DNA of 64,000 bases. It comes from Trichosphaerium sp. ATCC 40318 (lineage: Eukaryota; Protista; Tubulinea). Position numbers and translations under genes: made by a program. The notes below the pieces were generated by a model. That model ran no database searches, was not told the origin of the DNA, and was given only the letters and a program-made list of their open reading frames with translations. Below are positions 27,138 to 37,593 of this stretch, one piece after another (position 1 is the first letter of the stretch; every line of letters starts with the position of its first letter). Location of the stretch: NCBI GenBank assembly GCA_038496445.1, contig JALMLS010000540.1, positions 62,001-126,000 on the forward strand, in the 5' to 3' direction.

Positions 27138-29401
27138 TTAAGCGAAATCATAGTCTTCTTTCTTTGGATACATTGCACGCCAATAGTACTCAGATACAGA
27201 GTAAGGAGCATTATTGCGAACTTTGCCAGTGTTCTCTGCACGATACCTAAAAATAGAACTTGTAAGTCACGTGATAGATGAAGTATGAATCTTATTGTAC
27301 CAGCTGTTACAGTCAGAAGCGAAAACTGTACGCTCCATTCTCGTATCGATCATTTTCTTGTAGTTTTCCATGACTGATGATTTTATGTCTGCTGTTTTGT
27401 AATCATTGACGATCATCATGTCAACGAGTTTTGAGATATAATTCGCTTGGATCTCAACCATTGTAAGTATGGATGAGTGACCCAAGTTCGTGTGAGGGCC
27501 ATACGTAATATAAAAGTTTGGGAAGTCCGGGACAGACATACCTTGAAGAACACGTGAGGTCAAAAAAAAAATTCGAAAAAAACTGCGATGCGTACCCAAG
27601 TATGCGTATGCAATATCCTCGTTCCACATATCATGGAGGCTTTTAGAATCTTTACCTTTAACATCTACAGTTTCCAAAAACTTATGTGAGTTGAACCCAG
27701 TAGCAAATACAATGGCATCAACATCCAACTCTTTTCCAGATTTTGATATTATCCCTTTTTCTGTAACCTCAACTGCTCTTTCCGGAATTAGCTCAACATT
27801 TGATCTTTGAAGAGTTGGCAAGTAATCAGACGTAAGAAGCACCTAACAAGAATTAAACAAGATGAGAAGCTTAACATTAACGGCATCAGTACTCGTCTAC
27901 AACCAATCTTATAATCCGGTAATGTATGTTTTTCGAGCTCCTTTGGGATGTCAGGTTTCATTTCTTTTACGACTTGGCTTTCAAATATCTTGTTTATAGA
28001 GTCGTAAACAAAAGCAGGCCATCTTGCTTCAGTTTCTAAGTATAACAGCCAACGATAAATAGGCATGATAAACGGAATATTGAATAAAGCGTTAATGTTA
28101 TACTTTGGGTTCGGCCTTAAACATAACATTCAGTGAAACGTGGAGAAGAAAAAACGGAGAATAAATGTTTTTGTTGAGGTTTTACCTTGGTACTGTGAAA
28201 CTTGGTGTACTTTGGAATATGTAAAGCTGCTCTACTTCTTTAGCTATCTCTGGAATGACTTGGATTGCACTTGCTCCATTTCCAACAACTGCAACGGTCT
28301 TGTCTTTCAAATCAAAACTATGGTTCCATCTTGCTGTGTGCCAACTTTTACCGCTGAATTCATCAATGCCTGGAATAGATGGCATCTTTGGTACATCAAG
28401 TTGACCAACTGAACATACGACAACATTTTCCGTGGCTACCGCCTAAAATCGACTGTAAAACCAACAGGAAGATGCTGAAAAAAAAAACAAAAAAACCTCA
28501 TACTCCATGCTCGAAATGAAGATTCCACTGCTTCGTCTTATCACACCACTCCATTTTTTCAACCTGGGACAGGGTCAATTATAAACATTGCAACCATTCT
28601 ATAAAGACGAAGGAAAAGGTTACATCAAGGCTTGGTTTCTAGTAAATAGCTCTTTCGATTGTGCAAAAAAAACCACTATGTTTTACTATTGAGGCGCTTT
28701 AGTACCACAATAGTCACGTGGTGTGATTTGTTTCACAAAAAACATAAAGAAAGATAAAAAGTATGTGGTAGGTTGTATTTACCTTGTGATTTAGTTTTGC
28801 ATGCTCTGCTATGCCATACTTGTTAGCTACATCTTTAAGGTACGCCAAAATCTACAAATAAGTCTTGTTAGATACATTTTGGGTTTTAACATCGTAAATA
28901 TTATAAAACTATAGTTGAACGCAAGAAGAGCGATGTACATCGGTACCGCCGTCGCAATCACGTGATTTCAGAAAAATATGGTAAACAAATAAACTTTTTA
29001 CAGATTTTACAGTTTCCAGGTTAACGAACTTACCTCTTGTTGTGGTGAGTACCTTCTAGACCACGACAAGTTAGGCGAGAATGAGTAAGAGTACAAGTAA
29101 GATTTAACATCACAAGCACAACCGGGGTAAGTATTTTTATACCATGTCCCACCCAAAGAGTCCGCTTTTTCGTAAATAGTAAAGGGAATACCTTGATACA
29201 GAATGAGTTTTGATCTTATTTGTGGAAAGTTTTAAACGTACCTCGTAATTTGAGTTTAATCGCCATACAAACGCCTGAAAACCCGCCACCTATGATACCG
29301 ACGCTTATAGGGCATTTTTGAGGGTTATGAACTCGGTGTCTTCTTGTTAGTAAGTAAAGTAACCCTATGACTACTACAGCTGTAAGAATAGTCCAGAGCA
29401 T
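27138..29401 (-). CDS. Baeyer-Villiger/flavin-containing monooxygenase with N-terminal membrane anchor; multi-exon
   Basis: IIGGGFSG (FAD), [26 protein letters not shown] (BVMO fingerprint FxGxxxHxxxW), VGNGASAIQ (NADPH), ATGF. Confidence 0.93.
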
Positions 29402-29625: not shown

Positions 29626-32600
29626 TCATACTTGGCAGGTAGCAGGGAAGTTTCTATTAAAAAAAAAGTCAGATACAAGATTAATGAGTGTTGACTGTTT
29701 TTGGTTTCAAACGTACTTGTTATGGTTGCAAACAAACTCATTTTCTTCGTTTCTAGTCTCTACTCTGAAAGCAATGCGTACATTTGGTACATTAGTTTTT
29801 GTAGGATCTAAAAAGACAAGTAAGCCAAAAAACGATACTGGTCAAAAAAACATAAAAATTATTATCGCAAGTTTTGTTTTCCTTACCGTTTCCTTCTATT
29901 CCTGTAAGATTATGGTTTTTGCCATACCAAGATATACGTGTTCCATCATCAAATCCAGAAACAAGAACTGAATTACGGGCAACCTCACATAGATCAGTAT
30001 TGGACAACTTCCACATCTAGAAAAAAAGGTCATTAGCAACACGAAATAAAGATGTCTGGCAGAGTTCAGTTTTTACGTACTTGAGCGGCAATAGCATATT
30101 CTTCAGAGATAGGATCAGCAGTAATATGGAGCTGTAGTGGTTTATCAGTACTCAAGCACACTTTCAATCCACGTTGGAAGAAAGCATAGAATGGATTATC
30201 TACGAGAAAAAATAAGTACATGTTTTTTGTTTAACTCGTTTTAAACTTACCCTTGTACGGTAACACCATAGCATTAGCACTTAGTGGAGCCATTGAAAGA
30301 CCAACACCATCTAGAAGGAATAGATACTGTGTTACATGATGATAACGTAATTGAAGACCCTAAAAAAATGAGCCAAAGAACAACGCATTAAAAGTACAAA
30401 TAGTCAAGCTTTAATGCGTACTTGATAGATTGAGTGGCACATCAAATATGACGCATCAATTTCTTTGAATGATGCACGGAGGTGACCAGCGAAGGTACGG
30501 AGTTGGAAAGTATCTTACAACGGTTAAGAATAAAAATGATTTTGAAAAAATAAAAATAATCATATAAGAGGATACTAGCGCCAACTGCTTGTCTGAAGTG
30601 ATTCAAAGTATAAATATTCGCCCAAAGGAAGTATAGCATATAATGGAATGGAGGTTGATGCTTTGAAGTCCAAAATCGAGGTCTTTGAAGTCCAAGAAGA
30701 TTAAAGAAAACAATTGGAAGAAAAAGTAGAAAAAACAAAATAAAAAATGATACGGATGAATATGAGGTTTTGTGTCTCTTGGAATCGTCACACGAAGAGC
30801 AGATACATGAGTAAGAAACTCAGAAAGATGTGGATAAGCTTTAGGGTCTATTCAAAGAGGTCAGAAAGAAGAATTTTGGGTAGTGCCGAAACCAGTACCT
30901 TTTGTGACATTGAACAAAGTCTCAAACAAATTAGTCAAAAGATCATTCAAGTTTTCTATCTCTCCCTTTCTCCTGAATAAAGCATATTCAACTTGAACAT
31001 CAAGCACAAAACGTGTTTGTGCGTATTTATGAAGTCCATTTGATACAATAAAGCGTGCAAGTTCAGCTAATTCAGTAACACTCCTATATCAAAAAACGTG
31101 AGTTTTTGATGTTTCTCTACTCAGAGTTAGGCGTACCTTCCATATATAGGGACGTGGAACTCATATTGGTGTGATTTGTTCTCCGTACGCTTTTCGAATA
31201 CTTCTCGGAGGAGTTCAGCATAATATTTGCCTACCATAATTTGTTATTTTTTGTTTACTTTGGGGAAAAGTAGCACCTTGAATGTCATTGTTGTACTGCA
31301 AAAACACTGTTTGAAGCTCTGAATTTCCTAGAGGGTTATATTTGGCGTTAAAAGCATCTAATCTGAATCTAGTATCCTCAGCAGGTGCCTAACAAAGAAA
31401 GATATCAATAACAACATCAACAAAAAGTTAAAGAAAGGTTGAACAAGAAAACACCCAGTACCTGAACGTCTAGGCTATCAAGTGTCAAGTACTCAATTGG
31501 AAGATTCAAGGTACTATATAATTCACCTAATGTCACACCCTTTCCGCCTTCTTGCTGGATAACAATGTCATCAGAATTATTTCGCACTTTTTTCTTAATA
31601 AAATCAAGCAAGTGCGTTGCTCCCATTGACGACTTTAAGTCGCAGCACGTATCAACTTTAATAACTTCATAGTAATCTGACATAACAGCATTCTAAATAA
31701 ACAATAGCGTTAATGGCCACAAAAGAGAAGATTTAAAGAGGAAAAAGAAATTAAGCCAAAAACAAACAGAAGTTATACTACCTTGCAGGCTTCTTTTTCT
31801 CTTTTGTCGTTTAATATTTGATGCACATTGTACTTCGATGCACAAAAGTGTAGCCTAGATCTTGCAGAGGTGCGGTTGGCCGCATCATTTGTAATTTTGG
31901 TAAGACTATAGCGAAACACGTGAGTTTCACGTGATAACTTGTTGATAAAAAAATTGTTTAACTTACACTTCAAAGTCATGCAAGTACTCTGGAAGTTCAG
32001 GGATAGGTGATATTGGCTCACATGCTAAGAAATACGATTAGATGGAAAAGGATTATCACTAACAGAATACATACCCATAAATTGCTTGCCATCAATCTCT
32101 CTACCCTCGTAAACACGATAAATACCTTTTCGCATAATAATATGCCACTGTGGGAAGTAGGATTAGTATAAGATAATGCCTTGGGTTTTTTTTTAAGCTA
32201 CCTTGTCATCAAGCGAGTTCTTTGTTACATTTGATTCGTCAGGGACGAATACGTATTTCTTACGTAAGGCACGTGCTACTGCAACGCCTTGGCACATCTT
32301 CAATGTCTCATCACTTGGTGTTGTCACTGAAGGAAAAGAAAACAACAGGTTACAACCACGATCAACAGAACAAAAAAACGAAAGAAATTAAAACGTTCAG
32401 TTTACCTCCAGACTTAATTTGAAGTCTTGTATACTCAGCTGAAAGAGACAGAGCTTCTGAACTTTTAAAAGGCCTGATAATAGCTTTCTGCGAAGGTGTT
32501 ATAGCAGTTTTAGGTCTATTAGTTGCCTTGACGCAATGGTTGAGGAACAATAGCTCCCCTTGCATTGTCTCCTGACGATAATAAATACGAATATCCGGTA

Positions 32601-35527
32601 CATTCGTAAACTTGATATCTAAGCACAGAAGTGAGTCAAACAATACAAACACAAAAGCACTGTGGAAAACTTGAAGAAGAAAATGAACAAAAATCATGTC
32701 CACACTGGTGAGGTTGCTCCTGTTTTCGTTCGGAACTCCATTAGGTTTATACTTACTGTTTCCATTAGCTCCTGGCTCCTCGTAGTGTTTTCCCAACCAT
32801 TTTTCTTTAATACCATGTTCAAAACCTAGGAGAAGCTTAGCAAGAGCATGAATAGATGGCCGAGGTAGTTACCTGATTGCAATACACTATTGCGTGCAAT
32901 CTCACTCAAATCAATATTGTTGAATCCCCAACGCTGTTACATGAGTAAGGTACACTGTTTATGATACGTATAAGTACCTGTGATGCTATTGCATACTCTT
33001 CAATGAGAGGGTCTTCAGTGTAATGAAACTGTAAAGGATCATCTGTTGATAACGAAACGTTCAAACCACGTTGAAAGAATACAGGGAATGGGTTTCTCTT
33101 GTAATCCAAGAAAAGAGAATTATTAGATAATGGAGATACTGCTAAACCAATTTGGGCAAGATAATACCTTAGAGGAGTCAGAATAATTGGGGAACAGTTG
33201 AGAAAAGTTGAAAGATTAAGCGTACAAGTATTGTAAACTTGTTGATTTAGTCAAGTTGATGCCGTGGTTGATATGCTTTGATGTTAGGAATGCTGAAGCC
33301 AAATGATCGACATCTCCGCTTTCACCACAGTGAGGTCTCAAGTCAAAGGTTTCTAGAGTAGTTAAGGCAACACAAAAAACTGATATTCCGAAAAAAAATG
33401 GTTCAAAATGTGGATACTAAAGCCTCTGGACTTTCTCAACTGATTCAGCGAACATATATTTGCCCACATGTAGTACCTTCAACTCTGTCAGAAAATGTGT
33501 AATTACAACGATACGTACATGTAGTAAGCATAAGGAGGGTTCTTCTCTGAAGTCCAATCAGCTGGTTTTATATTGAGAATACTAGAAAAAATTAATTGGA
33601 AACAATTACTATTTATGTTTCGCGTACGCTTTAGTAAATTTAGGCTCAGCACGGCTTTCATCATCAACGCTATCAAATCCACTGACTTGATTCAAGAATT
33701 CATGTATTTCAGGGTGACTTGAAGGGTCCAAAGTCGCTTCAAATAGCGGTAGAAAGATATCTTAAATGTTAATGAAAAATCTTGTTTGCGAAAACAAAAC
33801 AAAACGAAAAAACCGTTTGGATACTGTCTAACATCTCTTGAAATGATTTGATGTATCCGTGATGTTTAAAAACTGGATAAACACGAGGTACTTGAATAAG
33901 CCACCTTTGATTGCTCGAGTATATTTTATAGGTAGACATCCATTTTGCCAATGAACTCCAATCTGTTTTTTTACGGCCATAAATAGAAATACGGAACTCA
34001 GCCGCTTGTGTGCCAGAAAGGTCAATTTTTCTCAAGAGCTCATTGGTCAACTCAGCGTAATATCTTCCTTTAATATAATTTTCTGATTTTAAGAATACTT
34101 CGCGAAGTTGAGAGATACCTACAATTAAACTTAGACAAAGCAAAAAAAATTATAATTAGGTAGATTTGTTCAAGAAAAATTTTTTGAGACTCGCGATGGT
34201 CACGTGATTATTCTTTGATGCTACATACCGAAAGGATTATATTTCATGTTAAAATTATCAAACCTTTGGAAAGTATTATCTGCCTTGATAAACATGTGAG
34301 CGAGGAACAAACATAAAACACAAATCGATAAAAATGTCACACCCTAGTATCCAAGTTTTTTACAGAAAACTGACTCATGGTGATACCATGCTTACTAATT
34401 ACTTCTGATAATTTTTCTGGTTTATCATCACTACTGCTTACAATATCCTGTATAAAATTAGTTGTCGAAGGATCGTACAGCCAAAAAAAAAAATCAGTAA
34501 TAAAACGCACATCGGGAAAATCTCTAACTTTCGCCTTAATAAACCTCAACAAATGACGGGACGTCATTGCAGCTGATAGGTGAATATGAGTGTCTACTTT
34601 AGTGACATTATTAAAGTCTCTAGGATCATACTAGAACAACATTGTGAGTCCTTTTTAACTACAAAAAGAAAACAAGAAAACGTCAAAAAAAAATACATAC
34701 TTGAGTTGCTGCTACTTCACGCGCAGAGTTGAGCTCGCTGTGTATCTTATATTTTTCTTCCAGCAGCTTCAGACGCCTATACGTTGTAGTCTTAACACTA
34801 CCAGTCAATGCAGTGCCCAAAACTCTAAAGAACAAAAAAGTTAGCGCCTGAAAATTGTTTTAACCTTTAACCGTCATACTTTTGATAGTCCTCGAAGTAC
34901 TGTTCGACTGATATTATCTTGGTTTGCGCTGTGATCAAATGTCAAAGTCTTCAAATTCAAAAATGTTTTTCTGTTTACGTACGTTTGCCATCAACCGCAT
35001 GAACAATGTATATACCATCAATACACTTGATCGTGAGCTACAATGCGTTAAAACGAAAGTTGACCTACAAAATCGTGTAATGCCGTTATAAAGTGATCAC
35101 CAACTGTGGTGAACGACAATATACGCCTGGGCGGTCGCTTGTGAATGTCCTTACCTTAGTAGGGCCTGGTGGAGTAGGATCTGTAGGTAAACTCCAAAAT
35201 GTGTTGCGAGAGCTGACGGCTTCATATTTATCGCGTAATTTGAGCGCTTCTAAAATTAAAGTACATGCTTCTTTTTTTTCCGCAGAGACGTTGTTATCTG
35301 TACAACAGAACGCGTGAGAAACTATGAAAGACTATTTTCGTACCAACTGCTTGAACATCTATTCGCGGATACGTTTGAAAGCACTCTTCCTTACTATAAG
35401 TGCGTGCGGTGGTACTGCTGCGCCACCAAGTTCTTCTAGCGCTTGCTTCAGGGTTTTTGTTGTGTCTGCCCAGTGAGGGCGTACCAGGATCTTCAAAATC
35501 CATAGACAACTCAGGTACAGTTGTCAT
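29626..35527 (-). CDS. AMPD: AMP deaminase with two tandem AMPD domains (first catalytic, second degenerate); multi-exon, both ends approximate
   Basis: Domain 1 has [19 protein letters not shown] and LSTDDP. Domain 2 has KVDTCCD, RTFAGH, IYQG and LSTDKP. The exon at about 32406-32618 reads from the end of domain 1 into the start of domain 2 without a stop. Confidence 0.88.
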
Positions 35528-35901: not shown

Positions 35902-37593
35902 TCACATACTTTTATCATCTTGAAATCTAGCTCTTGGAGAATGTCTACAAAGATAACTCAGTACGAAGATAAATAAGAAGGGTACTTACGTAGTCTTCCT
36001 TCGATTCTTGTAGCTGCTATCACTTTTTCTCTTTTTCAATCGTCTTGATGCCTTTAAAGATTGACCTGTACTCTTTTTAATACGAGGCGCTTTAAAGTTG
36101 TAACTCTCGAATATTCGAAGAATCTTTGAGTTTCGTTTATCAATAGCAATAGAGAAAGGAGTATCACCTATAAAATAAAAAAGAAAGTCAGAAGTTTTGT
36201 AGATTCACAACATTCTGTAGCTACTGACCCCATTTGTTTTTAACATTTCCATTAGCCTTGTAACCTAGTAGAAACTCAACCACTTCTTCATTCTCGTAGT
36301 GAGCAGCAATATGAAGTGGTGTTGATCCCTAAGTATTTAGTATGAGATTTTACAGTGGTAAAAAATGTTCGAATGCTTACTTGAGGGTTTTTATAGTGGA
36401 CACATTGAGGGTTACTTTTAACAATCTTGTATAACAATGTACACTTAGTCGGTGCTTTTATAACAACATACGATGTTGCAATAAATATCTCAGGCCAGCC
36501 CTATAACTTGTAAGAATACATAAAGATTTGAATGTGTCAACTTCTTATACCTTGTTAATACGTTCCAACTTATACGTTGCCTCATCGTAACCAACCTCCT
36601 TTACCCATTCTGGAATTTCTAGGTTTTCGGCAGTTGCTTTAGGTGGTTCTGCCAGGACATCTTCATCTGATAAACTTATGCTCACATCATCTCCGTCATC
36701 ATCGCTTTGCACTTAGGAAAATTTTAATTGTTTGCTCCTCAGTTTTCCAAAATACGTACTTGCTGAACGTTTGCGAGTGACATTAACTTGTTTCGTATTT
36801 ATTGATGAGGCAGTTAGAGACTTTGAAGCTCTAAGTTGCGTTCTTCTATCTAGTAATCAAAAAGTTAGCCAACACGTTACTGCGATCTTTTTTTTTTACC
36901 TCTAACAATAGATATTGTGAATGGGTACCCTTTTGCAGCGATACCGCTGACAATGATACATATATGATACTTTCCTGTCGTAGAAGCTTTCCTATTGATG
37001 ATATTAACGCCTCCTACCAAGCCACAGCCCAAACACCCAAATCGTACCATGTAGCAACAAATTTACCATCCTCTTCTTTTTTCAAGTCTACAGTTACTGG
37101 CTCCGGACCGCGGACCATAAAGATAACATCTACCATAAACACATCTACAACATTATTTCCATTTTTATCTTTTGGTTGTATTACAACGTTCATGTCTTTA
37201 TTCGGAAGGTACAGACCTTTCTCTAGACCTTGTACTGTACCTGTTTAAAAAGGTCAAAAGAGCCAACAAAAAAGAAAAATTATCACGTGGGAAGGTGTTC
37301 GTACTGTACAGGTGTTTTGGCTTCGTAAACCTTACACGTTTAACCCCAAGTTCTCCTAATGTCTTTTTGTCGTCTAATACATTGCCATCCTTGTCAGTAG
37401 CTTCGAAAGCGTTGTAATCTATTCCTCTCTTGCGGCATTTAACTTTTAGGACACGTCTGAGTGTTTGCTTTGGTTTGAACCGTAACCGCGACACGTGTCC
37501 GTCAGGAAGGCGTAAAATCAAGTCTAGTATATGTGTGCATAAGTACAAGGCAAGTACATAAAATAAAAATGTACCTGAAGAGCTGGAATCCAT
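35902..37593 (-). CDS. Raf-type Ras-binding (ubiquitin-fold) domain, filamin/ABP280 Ig repeat and ankyrin repeats; a separate gene or the 5' part of the AMPD gene
   Basis: LRLPDGHVSRLRFKPKQTLRRVL (RBD-like); GLEKG...VRGPEPVTV...DGKFVATW.ASTTGKYHICIIVSG...GYPFTISI (filamin); GSTPLHIAAHYENEEVVEFLLGYKAN and GDTPFSIA (ankyrin). Confidence 0.78.

Follow-up and report, generated by a model that had tools for sequence, protein, structure and literature searches.

Single-domain AMP deaminases (AMPDs), among them human AMPD1-3, yeast Amd1 and Arabidopsis FAC1 (Pfam family PF19326), form homo-oligomers of identical live subunits. AMPD is a tetramer with an allosteric ATP site within the catalytic domain, and it is activated by ATP and inhibited by GTP and by phosphate (PMC13277832). 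We analyzed an AMPD gene in a 64,000-nucleotide stretch of the genome of Trichosphaerium sp. ATCC 40318 (Tubulinea; assembly GCA_038496445.1, contig JALMLS010000540.1, positions 62,001 to 126,000, hereafter the window) in which, unlike in those homo-oligomers, half of the AMPD folds are predicted to be dead and covalently attached to the live ones. Inactive AMPD paralogues are known from yeast, where YJL070C and YBR284W are free-standing proteins; likened by description only, they too have an AMPD-like fold that lacks the catalytic residues, but they are encoded by separate genes. Trypanosomatid prozymes are dead paralogues that activate AdoMetDC and deoxyhypusine synthase. Their likeness to the present gene is an analogy of working principle only, in that a dead paralogue pairs with a live enzyme; prozymes are separate polypeptides of unrelated folds, and activation of AMPD in this manner is itself drawn by analogy. 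Among open-access papers and preprints we found none on the inactive yeast paralogues and none describing tandem AMPD domains or an AMPD pseudoenzyme, which is not proof that such work is absent.

The closest counterparts are instead found in sequence databases. Two-domain AMPDs of Amoebozoa have the same live-then-dead order as the protein encoded in the window and are collinear with it over approximately 1200 residues at 35-46% identity. Two-domain AMPDs of Euglenozoa likewise carry one live and one dead domain per chain, but in the reversed order, with a dead N-terminal and a live C-terminal domain. Judged by its sequence, the window's gene is an ordinary member of this existing, unnamed family, whose proteins are deposited plainly as "AMP deaminase". 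A preliminary description of the locus, made from the letters of the DNA, had read it as an AMPD fused in frame to a catalytically dead second AMPD domain. The gene model, the introns, the gap between the halves and the orthologues all uphold one gene with a live half followed by a dead half; the design, however, is not special to this genome, and it is the usual form of AMPD in Amoebozoa, mirrored in Euglenozoa.

Taken as a whole, the locus is best explained as a single two-domain AMPD gene in which a live half carries a dead half as its built-in partner, a reading to which we give a probability of roughly 0.8. The features on which it rests are as follows.

35527-29626, minus strand: AMP deaminase gene, with its ATG at 35527 and the last base of its TGA at 29626
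35527-32542, minus strand: domain 1, residues 1 to about 636 (exons 1-17, the last in its first part), a short N-terminal region and a catalytically intact core
32618-32406, minus strand: exon 17, the junction exon, in which the first half ends (profile positions 600-629 of 630)
32541-32407, minus strand: linker, the 3' part of exon 17, 45 residues with neither Met nor stop
32405-32327, minus strand: intron 17, the junction intron, 79 nt, gtaaac...ttcag, phase 1
32362-32364, minus strand: in-frame TGA, 13 codons into intron 17 if retained, with domain 1 only as the product
32326-29626, minus strand: domain 2, residues 682-1271 (exons 18-33), a complete AMPD-fold region without catalytic residues

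The window is AT-rich and eukaryotic in character (36-40% G+C, with numerous short introns). Exons and introns were placed by coordinate after reading three frames, the intron ends being checked for GT and AG and the frame for openness. The resulting model has 33 exons that join into a single open frame of 1271 codons, and all 32 introns are GT-AG and between 42 and 138 nt long. Two of these introns are themselves in frame and free of stops: retention of intron 6 (34448-34510, 63 nt) would add 21 residues and retention of intron 16 (32619-32756, 138 nt) would add 46. Both were treated as introns because matching inserts are absent from the paralogous half and from the orthologues. A search of the genome with PF19326 identified this gene as the sole AMPD locus in the 70-Mb assembly. 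The other genomic match to that profile (G000:C98:45330-45650, equivalent to L010:1501-1821, minus strand) scores higher as an adenosine deaminase (PF00962, 38.5 bits) than as an AMPD (31.1 bits).

Whether the two halves belong to one gene depends on the junction between them. With intron 17 removed, exon 17 continues in frame into the second half; the preliminary description had proposed that domain 1 runs without a stop through a linker and across a phase-1 GT-AG intron, and both the intron and the continuing frame are present. The 10-residue end of the linker aligns with the 11-residue end of exon 1, and intron 17 corresponds to intron 1 in both position and phase, with an alignment column difference of 0. 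This correspondence extends along the gene: in a global alignment of the halves, 8 of the 16 introns per half occupy the same alignment column in the same phase (pairs 1/17, 2/18, 4/20, 5/21, 7/22, 12/27, 14/30 and 16/31), where about 0.14 coincidences would be expected by chance by our own arithmetic from 16 introns per half, some 620 columns and three phases. The intron homology implies that the junction intron copies an old coding-region intron and that the sequence just upstream of it copies the end of exon 1 rather than an intergenic spacer. The model is furthermore collinear across the junction, in single alignments of 1150-1300 residues, with more than 100 two-domain AMPD proteins. These comparisons indicate one 33-exon gene, not two, in which a live AMPD half is followed in frame by a dead one.

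The first half has every mark of a working enzyme. It matches PF19326 exon by exon over profile positions 178-629, between 34630 and 32365, with single exons scoring 44.6-127.6 bits against a curated cut-off of 27, and a local profile derived from seven single-domain AMPDs gives it 813 bits. To score the active site we used seven diagnostic positions: the two His of HxH, the His and the Glu within RPHCGE, the His in NHG and both Asp of STDDP. Domain 1 reads HHHEHDD at these positions, so that all seven zinc and catalytic residues are present, as in the single-domain enzymes whose full residue set and profile match it shares. All four motifs named in the preliminary description are present, the first two at the positions that it gave:

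34580-34600, minus strand: KVDTHIH, with the HxH zinc ligands
33315-33338, minus strand: RPHCGESG, with the zinc-ligand His and the catalytic Glu
33261-33272, minus strand: INHG, with the catalytic His
33035-33049, minus strand: STDDP, with the zinc-ligand Asp and the catalytic Asp

Domain 1 is 55-62% identical to the N-terminal domains of its orthologues. It is thus predicted to have the complete residue set of a functional zinc-dependent AMP deaminase, converting AMP to IMP and ammonia.

The second half retains the fold. Residues 53-648 and 673-1268 share 37% identity across 611 aligned positions (E = 4e-116), 10 of the domain 2 exons match PF19326 over profile positions 135-626 (178-599 in a first pass, between 31692 and 29795), and domain 2 reaches 567 bits against the local single-domain profile. 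These values, which chance would not produce by a wide margin, bear out the earlier claim of a second complete AMPD fold with its scaffold kept. The active site is a different matter, since domain 2 reads CDFHQDK where the family has HHHEHDD: HxH has become CxD, the next His is Phe, the Glu is His, the following His is Gln and the second Asp is Lys, leaving six of the seven residues replaced and the first Asp alone in place. All four substituted motifs named in the preliminary description were recovered:

31639-31659, minus strand: KVDTCCD, in place of KVDTHxH
30482-30499, minus strand: RTFAGH, in place of RPHCGE
30422-30430, minus strand: IYQ, in place of INH; the Gly that follows is the first codon of exon 29 (30357-30359)
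30138-30152, minus strand: STDKP, in place of STDDP

When exon 28, which spans RTFAGH to IYQ, was taken alone, the PF19326 match was no longer found, and exons 1, 2 and 18, which are N-terminal in their halves, likewise went unmatched in a Pfam search. Having lost its catalytic residues, domain 2 would be unable to bind the catalytic zinc or to shuttle protons in the known way, and it is best termed a putative pseudoenzyme domain in which the AMPD fold is kept while the zinc ligands and catalytic residues are gone. Its 16 exons are all open with correct splice sites. Across the family, 71 of 153 columns that are invariant (at least 90%) in N-terminal halves have an unchanged residue in at least 80% of C-terminal halves, among them the K-V-D that precedes the former HxH, the first Asp in STDxP, the histidine of PLQxH and E-E-Y. 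The DTCCD sequence is also present in P0001 (Logan ERR14224706), a 69%-identical fragment from another sample.

The preliminary description had proposed a search for tandem AMPD domains in other protists, and such proteins proved plentiful, with more than 100 two-domain AMPDs, among them proteins of Amoebozoa and Euglenozoa. Exon 22 of the dead half served as the query of a full-library HMMER search, and the relatives collected in this way were named through a cluster look-up and a word search with one match. The HMMER search uncovered many proteins of 1200-1800 residues, each with two matched stretches. Open reading frames (ORFs) with both halves occur in transcriptomes of Soliformovum irregulare, Pyxidicula operculata and Physarum polycephalum, and annotated two-domain "AMP deaminase" proteins in Pelomyxa schiedti (KAH3731959.1, 1241 aa), Planoprotostelium fungivorum (1370 and 1788 aa), Entamoeba invadens (1250 aa), E. 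nuttalli, E. marina and Mastigamoeba balamuthi. Euglenozoan two-domain proteins were found in Papus, Namystynia, Diplonema, Euglena, Bodo, Trypanosoma (T. brucei and T. cruzi) and Leishmania. Since several of the relatives come from mRNA assemblies, both halves are in those organisms demonstrably on one transcript. The linkers of the relatives are open and 29-138 residues long. The Physarum polycephalum transcript P0170 encodes a protein that is also 1271 residues long, and its first half is approximately 54-58% identical to that of the window.

The seven active-site positions were scored in both halves of 131 two-domain proteins, which fall into four classes:

N-terminal half intact, C-terminal half degenerate: 41 of 131, the amoebozoan type, with the window's protein included
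N-terminal half degenerate, C-terminal half intact: 64 of 131, the euglenozoan type
Both halves degenerate: 25 of 131, certain kinetoplastid-like paralogues
Both halves intact: 1 of 131, P0172 (from the Logan source)

At least one half is therefore degenerate in 130 of the 131 two-domain proteins sampled. Every C-terminal half of the amoebozoan type has lost the second Asp of STDDP, and the other losses vary by lineage; residue sets seen in other second halves include HHHEHDN, HHHAHDN, NKANSEQ, YRAIHDS and FHSRGYR. With six of seven residues lost, the second half in the window is among the most degenerate, whereas many amoebozoan relatives have lost just one or two. The paralogues with two degenerate halves include P0009, P0013, P0058, P0067 and P0130, with a C-terminal half reading NRSEYDS; because neither half is intact, the whole protein would be a pseudoenzyme.

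Several further observations concern the relatives. In many amoebozoan members a Cys/His-rich insert that looks like a B-box zinc finger lies close to where the second half starts, as seen in P0003 (at about residues 575-625), P0026, P0034, P0157, P0170 and P0192, and the window's protein is without it. Precomputed Pfam assignments list additional families in P0177 and P0178 (PF22586) and in P0161 (PF27933). The same kind of list gives EF-hand domains for P0244 (European Nucleotide Archive, 1264 aa), a two-domain AMPD, which hints at calcium control in some lineage. A 1346-residue AMPD of the amoebozoan type, P0168, is listed in NCBI under an archaeal metagenome-assembled genome, with the label hypothetical protein; its contig is probably eukaryotic and was binned by mistake.

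The tree of the halves comes from a quick maximum-likelihood search in which support is given by the Shimodaira-Hasegawa-like approximate likelihood ratio test (SH-aLRT) only. The first half of the window's protein groups with amoebozoan N-terminal halves (SH-aLRT 94), and its second half groups with two other fully dead C-terminal halves (SH-aLRT 95). Amoebozoan C-terminal halves lie on one side of a branch, with weak support (SH-aLRT 11), and the euglenozoan dead halves form a clade of their own. The branching patterns of first and second halves mirror each other, a pattern that fits one old duplication followed by vertical descent. In an approximately unbiased test, a duplication confined to Amoebozoa was not rejected (p = 0.32). 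We assign the gene to the two-domain AMPD family that occurs across Amoebozoa, as an orthologue of its members.

How the two halves might work together can be outlined from these comparisons. The C-terminal half would have arisen by tandem duplication of an AMPD gene that already bore introns. In an enzyme that is normally oligomeric, the dead half may take the place of the neighbouring protomer; packed against the live half, it would be an inbuilt partner without catalysis that stabilises or assembles the enzyme. Half of the sites in the resulting pseudo-hetero-oligomer would be active, and the dead half could possibly tune the enzyme through a retained nucleotide pocket or allosteric site. 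The dead half may act as a nucleotide sensor or regulator, as the preliminary description had suggested; what bears on such a role is that roughly half of the positions invariant in the family are retained, together with a weak pairing prediction. A structure prediction of the intramolecular dimer, also proposed there, was run on the halves of a relative, P0165 (residues 2-488 and 590-1085), and gave weak support for pairing, with an interaction prediction score from aligned errors (ipSAE) of 0.46 compared with 0.08 for the best control. Contact agreement between the runs was at least 87% and the predicted local distance difference test (pLDDT) value of the partner was at least 77. In calibration, 51 of 78 solved complexes attained the mark for pairing, against 2 of 108 mismatched pairs; at an ipSAE of 0.60 or lower it was attained by just 5 of those 78 complexes and by every one of the 4 passing mismatches, and a pass this low is wrong more often than right unless pairing was already likely on other grounds. 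The modelled score for P0165 is read as weak support and is not counted as evidence of binding.

Other readings of the locus can be weighed against this account. Left unspliced, the junction would separate two adjacent tandem paralogues, an AMPD gene ending at the TGA 13 codons into the putative intron and an inactive AMPD-like gene starting at the next ATG (MCQGV, 32297), which follows 64 bp past that stop; inactive AMPD paralogues do occur as separate genes in yeast, and RNA from this species that would decide the matter was not found. A gap of 64 bp is, however, far below the neighbouring spacers of 225 and approximately 460 bp, and the intron in question is the homologue of intron 1 in position and phase. 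Coding homology of the second half begins upstream of intron 17, in the frame of domain 1, and the more than 100 orthologues, several from mRNA assemblies, have both halves in one ORF; we consider a pair of separate genes very improbable. It is also conceivable that both forms are made, with splicing of intron 17 giving the two-domain protein, its retention giving a stand-alone live enzyme of about 695 residues, and splicing setting the share of enzyme that is partnered. Retention would close the frame cleanly after 13 extra codons, and the donor gtaaac differs from the gene's commoner gtaagt, gtacgt and gtatgt. Isoforms P0004 and P0152 of Pyxidicula differ in the second half, but they do so at the C-terminus and not at the junction, and any retained intron would give some product; we consider this arrangement unlikely.

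Two further alternatives concern the nature of the second half. It might have gained a new chemistry or ligand, for example a metal site formed by the Cys and Asp that replace HxH together with the first Asp of STDxP, given that the replacements Cys, Asp and His are all potential ligands and that DTCCD is conserved in P0001. Other dead second halves nevertheless differ widely at these positions (NKANSEQ, YRAIHDS, FHSRGYR), leaving no common new site in the family, and there are no columns in which a new residue is conserved specifically in C-terminal halves; a novel activity thus has little chance of being the right explanation. That the second half is a decaying, functionless remnant might be argued from its faster evolution, its lost catalytic residues and the missing Pfam match of exon 28, but 16 intact, stop-free exons with correct splice sites, a score of 567 bits to the AMPD profile, the 71 invariant positions kept, and the retention of a dead half across Amoebozoa and, mirrored, Euglenozoa make this barely credible. 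Several points do weigh against a live half with a built-in dead partner. Splicing of intron 17 is inferred, not observed, because RNA from this species was not found: a protein word search with the open frame of the junction exon, which covered proteins of 92-294 residues, gave no match and so no transcript-derived support. The short 10-residue motif at the N-terminus of the second half has no Pfam match of its own and, the exons being short and without such a match, depends on pairwise alignment and intron homology alone. The weak pairing score may be the model's memory of the family, because AMPD oligomers have been solved. Finally, the branch of the dead half is approximately three times as long as that of the live half (1.34 vs 0.46), and the dead half is 33-41% identical to orthologous C-terminal halves, no closer than it is to N-terminal halves. 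Despite the longer branch and low identity, the exons are intact and the 71 columns are kept, which points to a constraint on the dead half that is relaxed but present.

For the window itself, the outcome is a sound annotation: the organism's only AMP deaminase is encoded by one 33-exon gene. The family-wide pairing of a live with a dead domain, which we found described in no paper, is modestly interesting and may merit a short study. The family spans free-living amoebae and the parasites Entamoeba, Trypanosoma and Leishmania, major parasites for which purine salvage is essential to supply. Should the dead half control the live one, it would offer a parasite-specific handle on purine metabolism and a clear-cut natural example of an enzyme joined to a pseudoenzyme of its own. 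A more far-reaching reading holds that live/dead AMPDs are a general regulatory design, common to Amoebozoa (Entamoeba included) and, in mirrored order, to Euglenozoa (Trypanosoma and Leishmania included), in which the dead half would serve as an allosteric, nucleotide-sensing "prozyme in cis" within a half-of-sites enzyme; we regard this as possible but rather doubtful.

The genes on either side lie on the same strand. The upstream gene (35986-37593, minus strand) has a ubiquitin-like or Ras-binding-like start, a filamin-like exon and ankyrin repeats, and its last open frame closes with a basic tail and a stop codon near 35986-35988, which leaves approximately 460 bp up to the AMPD ATG. We considered whether this Ras-binding/filamin/ankyrin module could form part of the AMPD gene, which is unlikely given that stop and the similarly short N-termini of the orthologues. 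The downstream gene (27267-29401, minus strand) starts with an ATG at 29401, 225 bp past the AMPD stop, and has an N-terminus with a GxGxxG motif resembling that of flavin monooxygenases.

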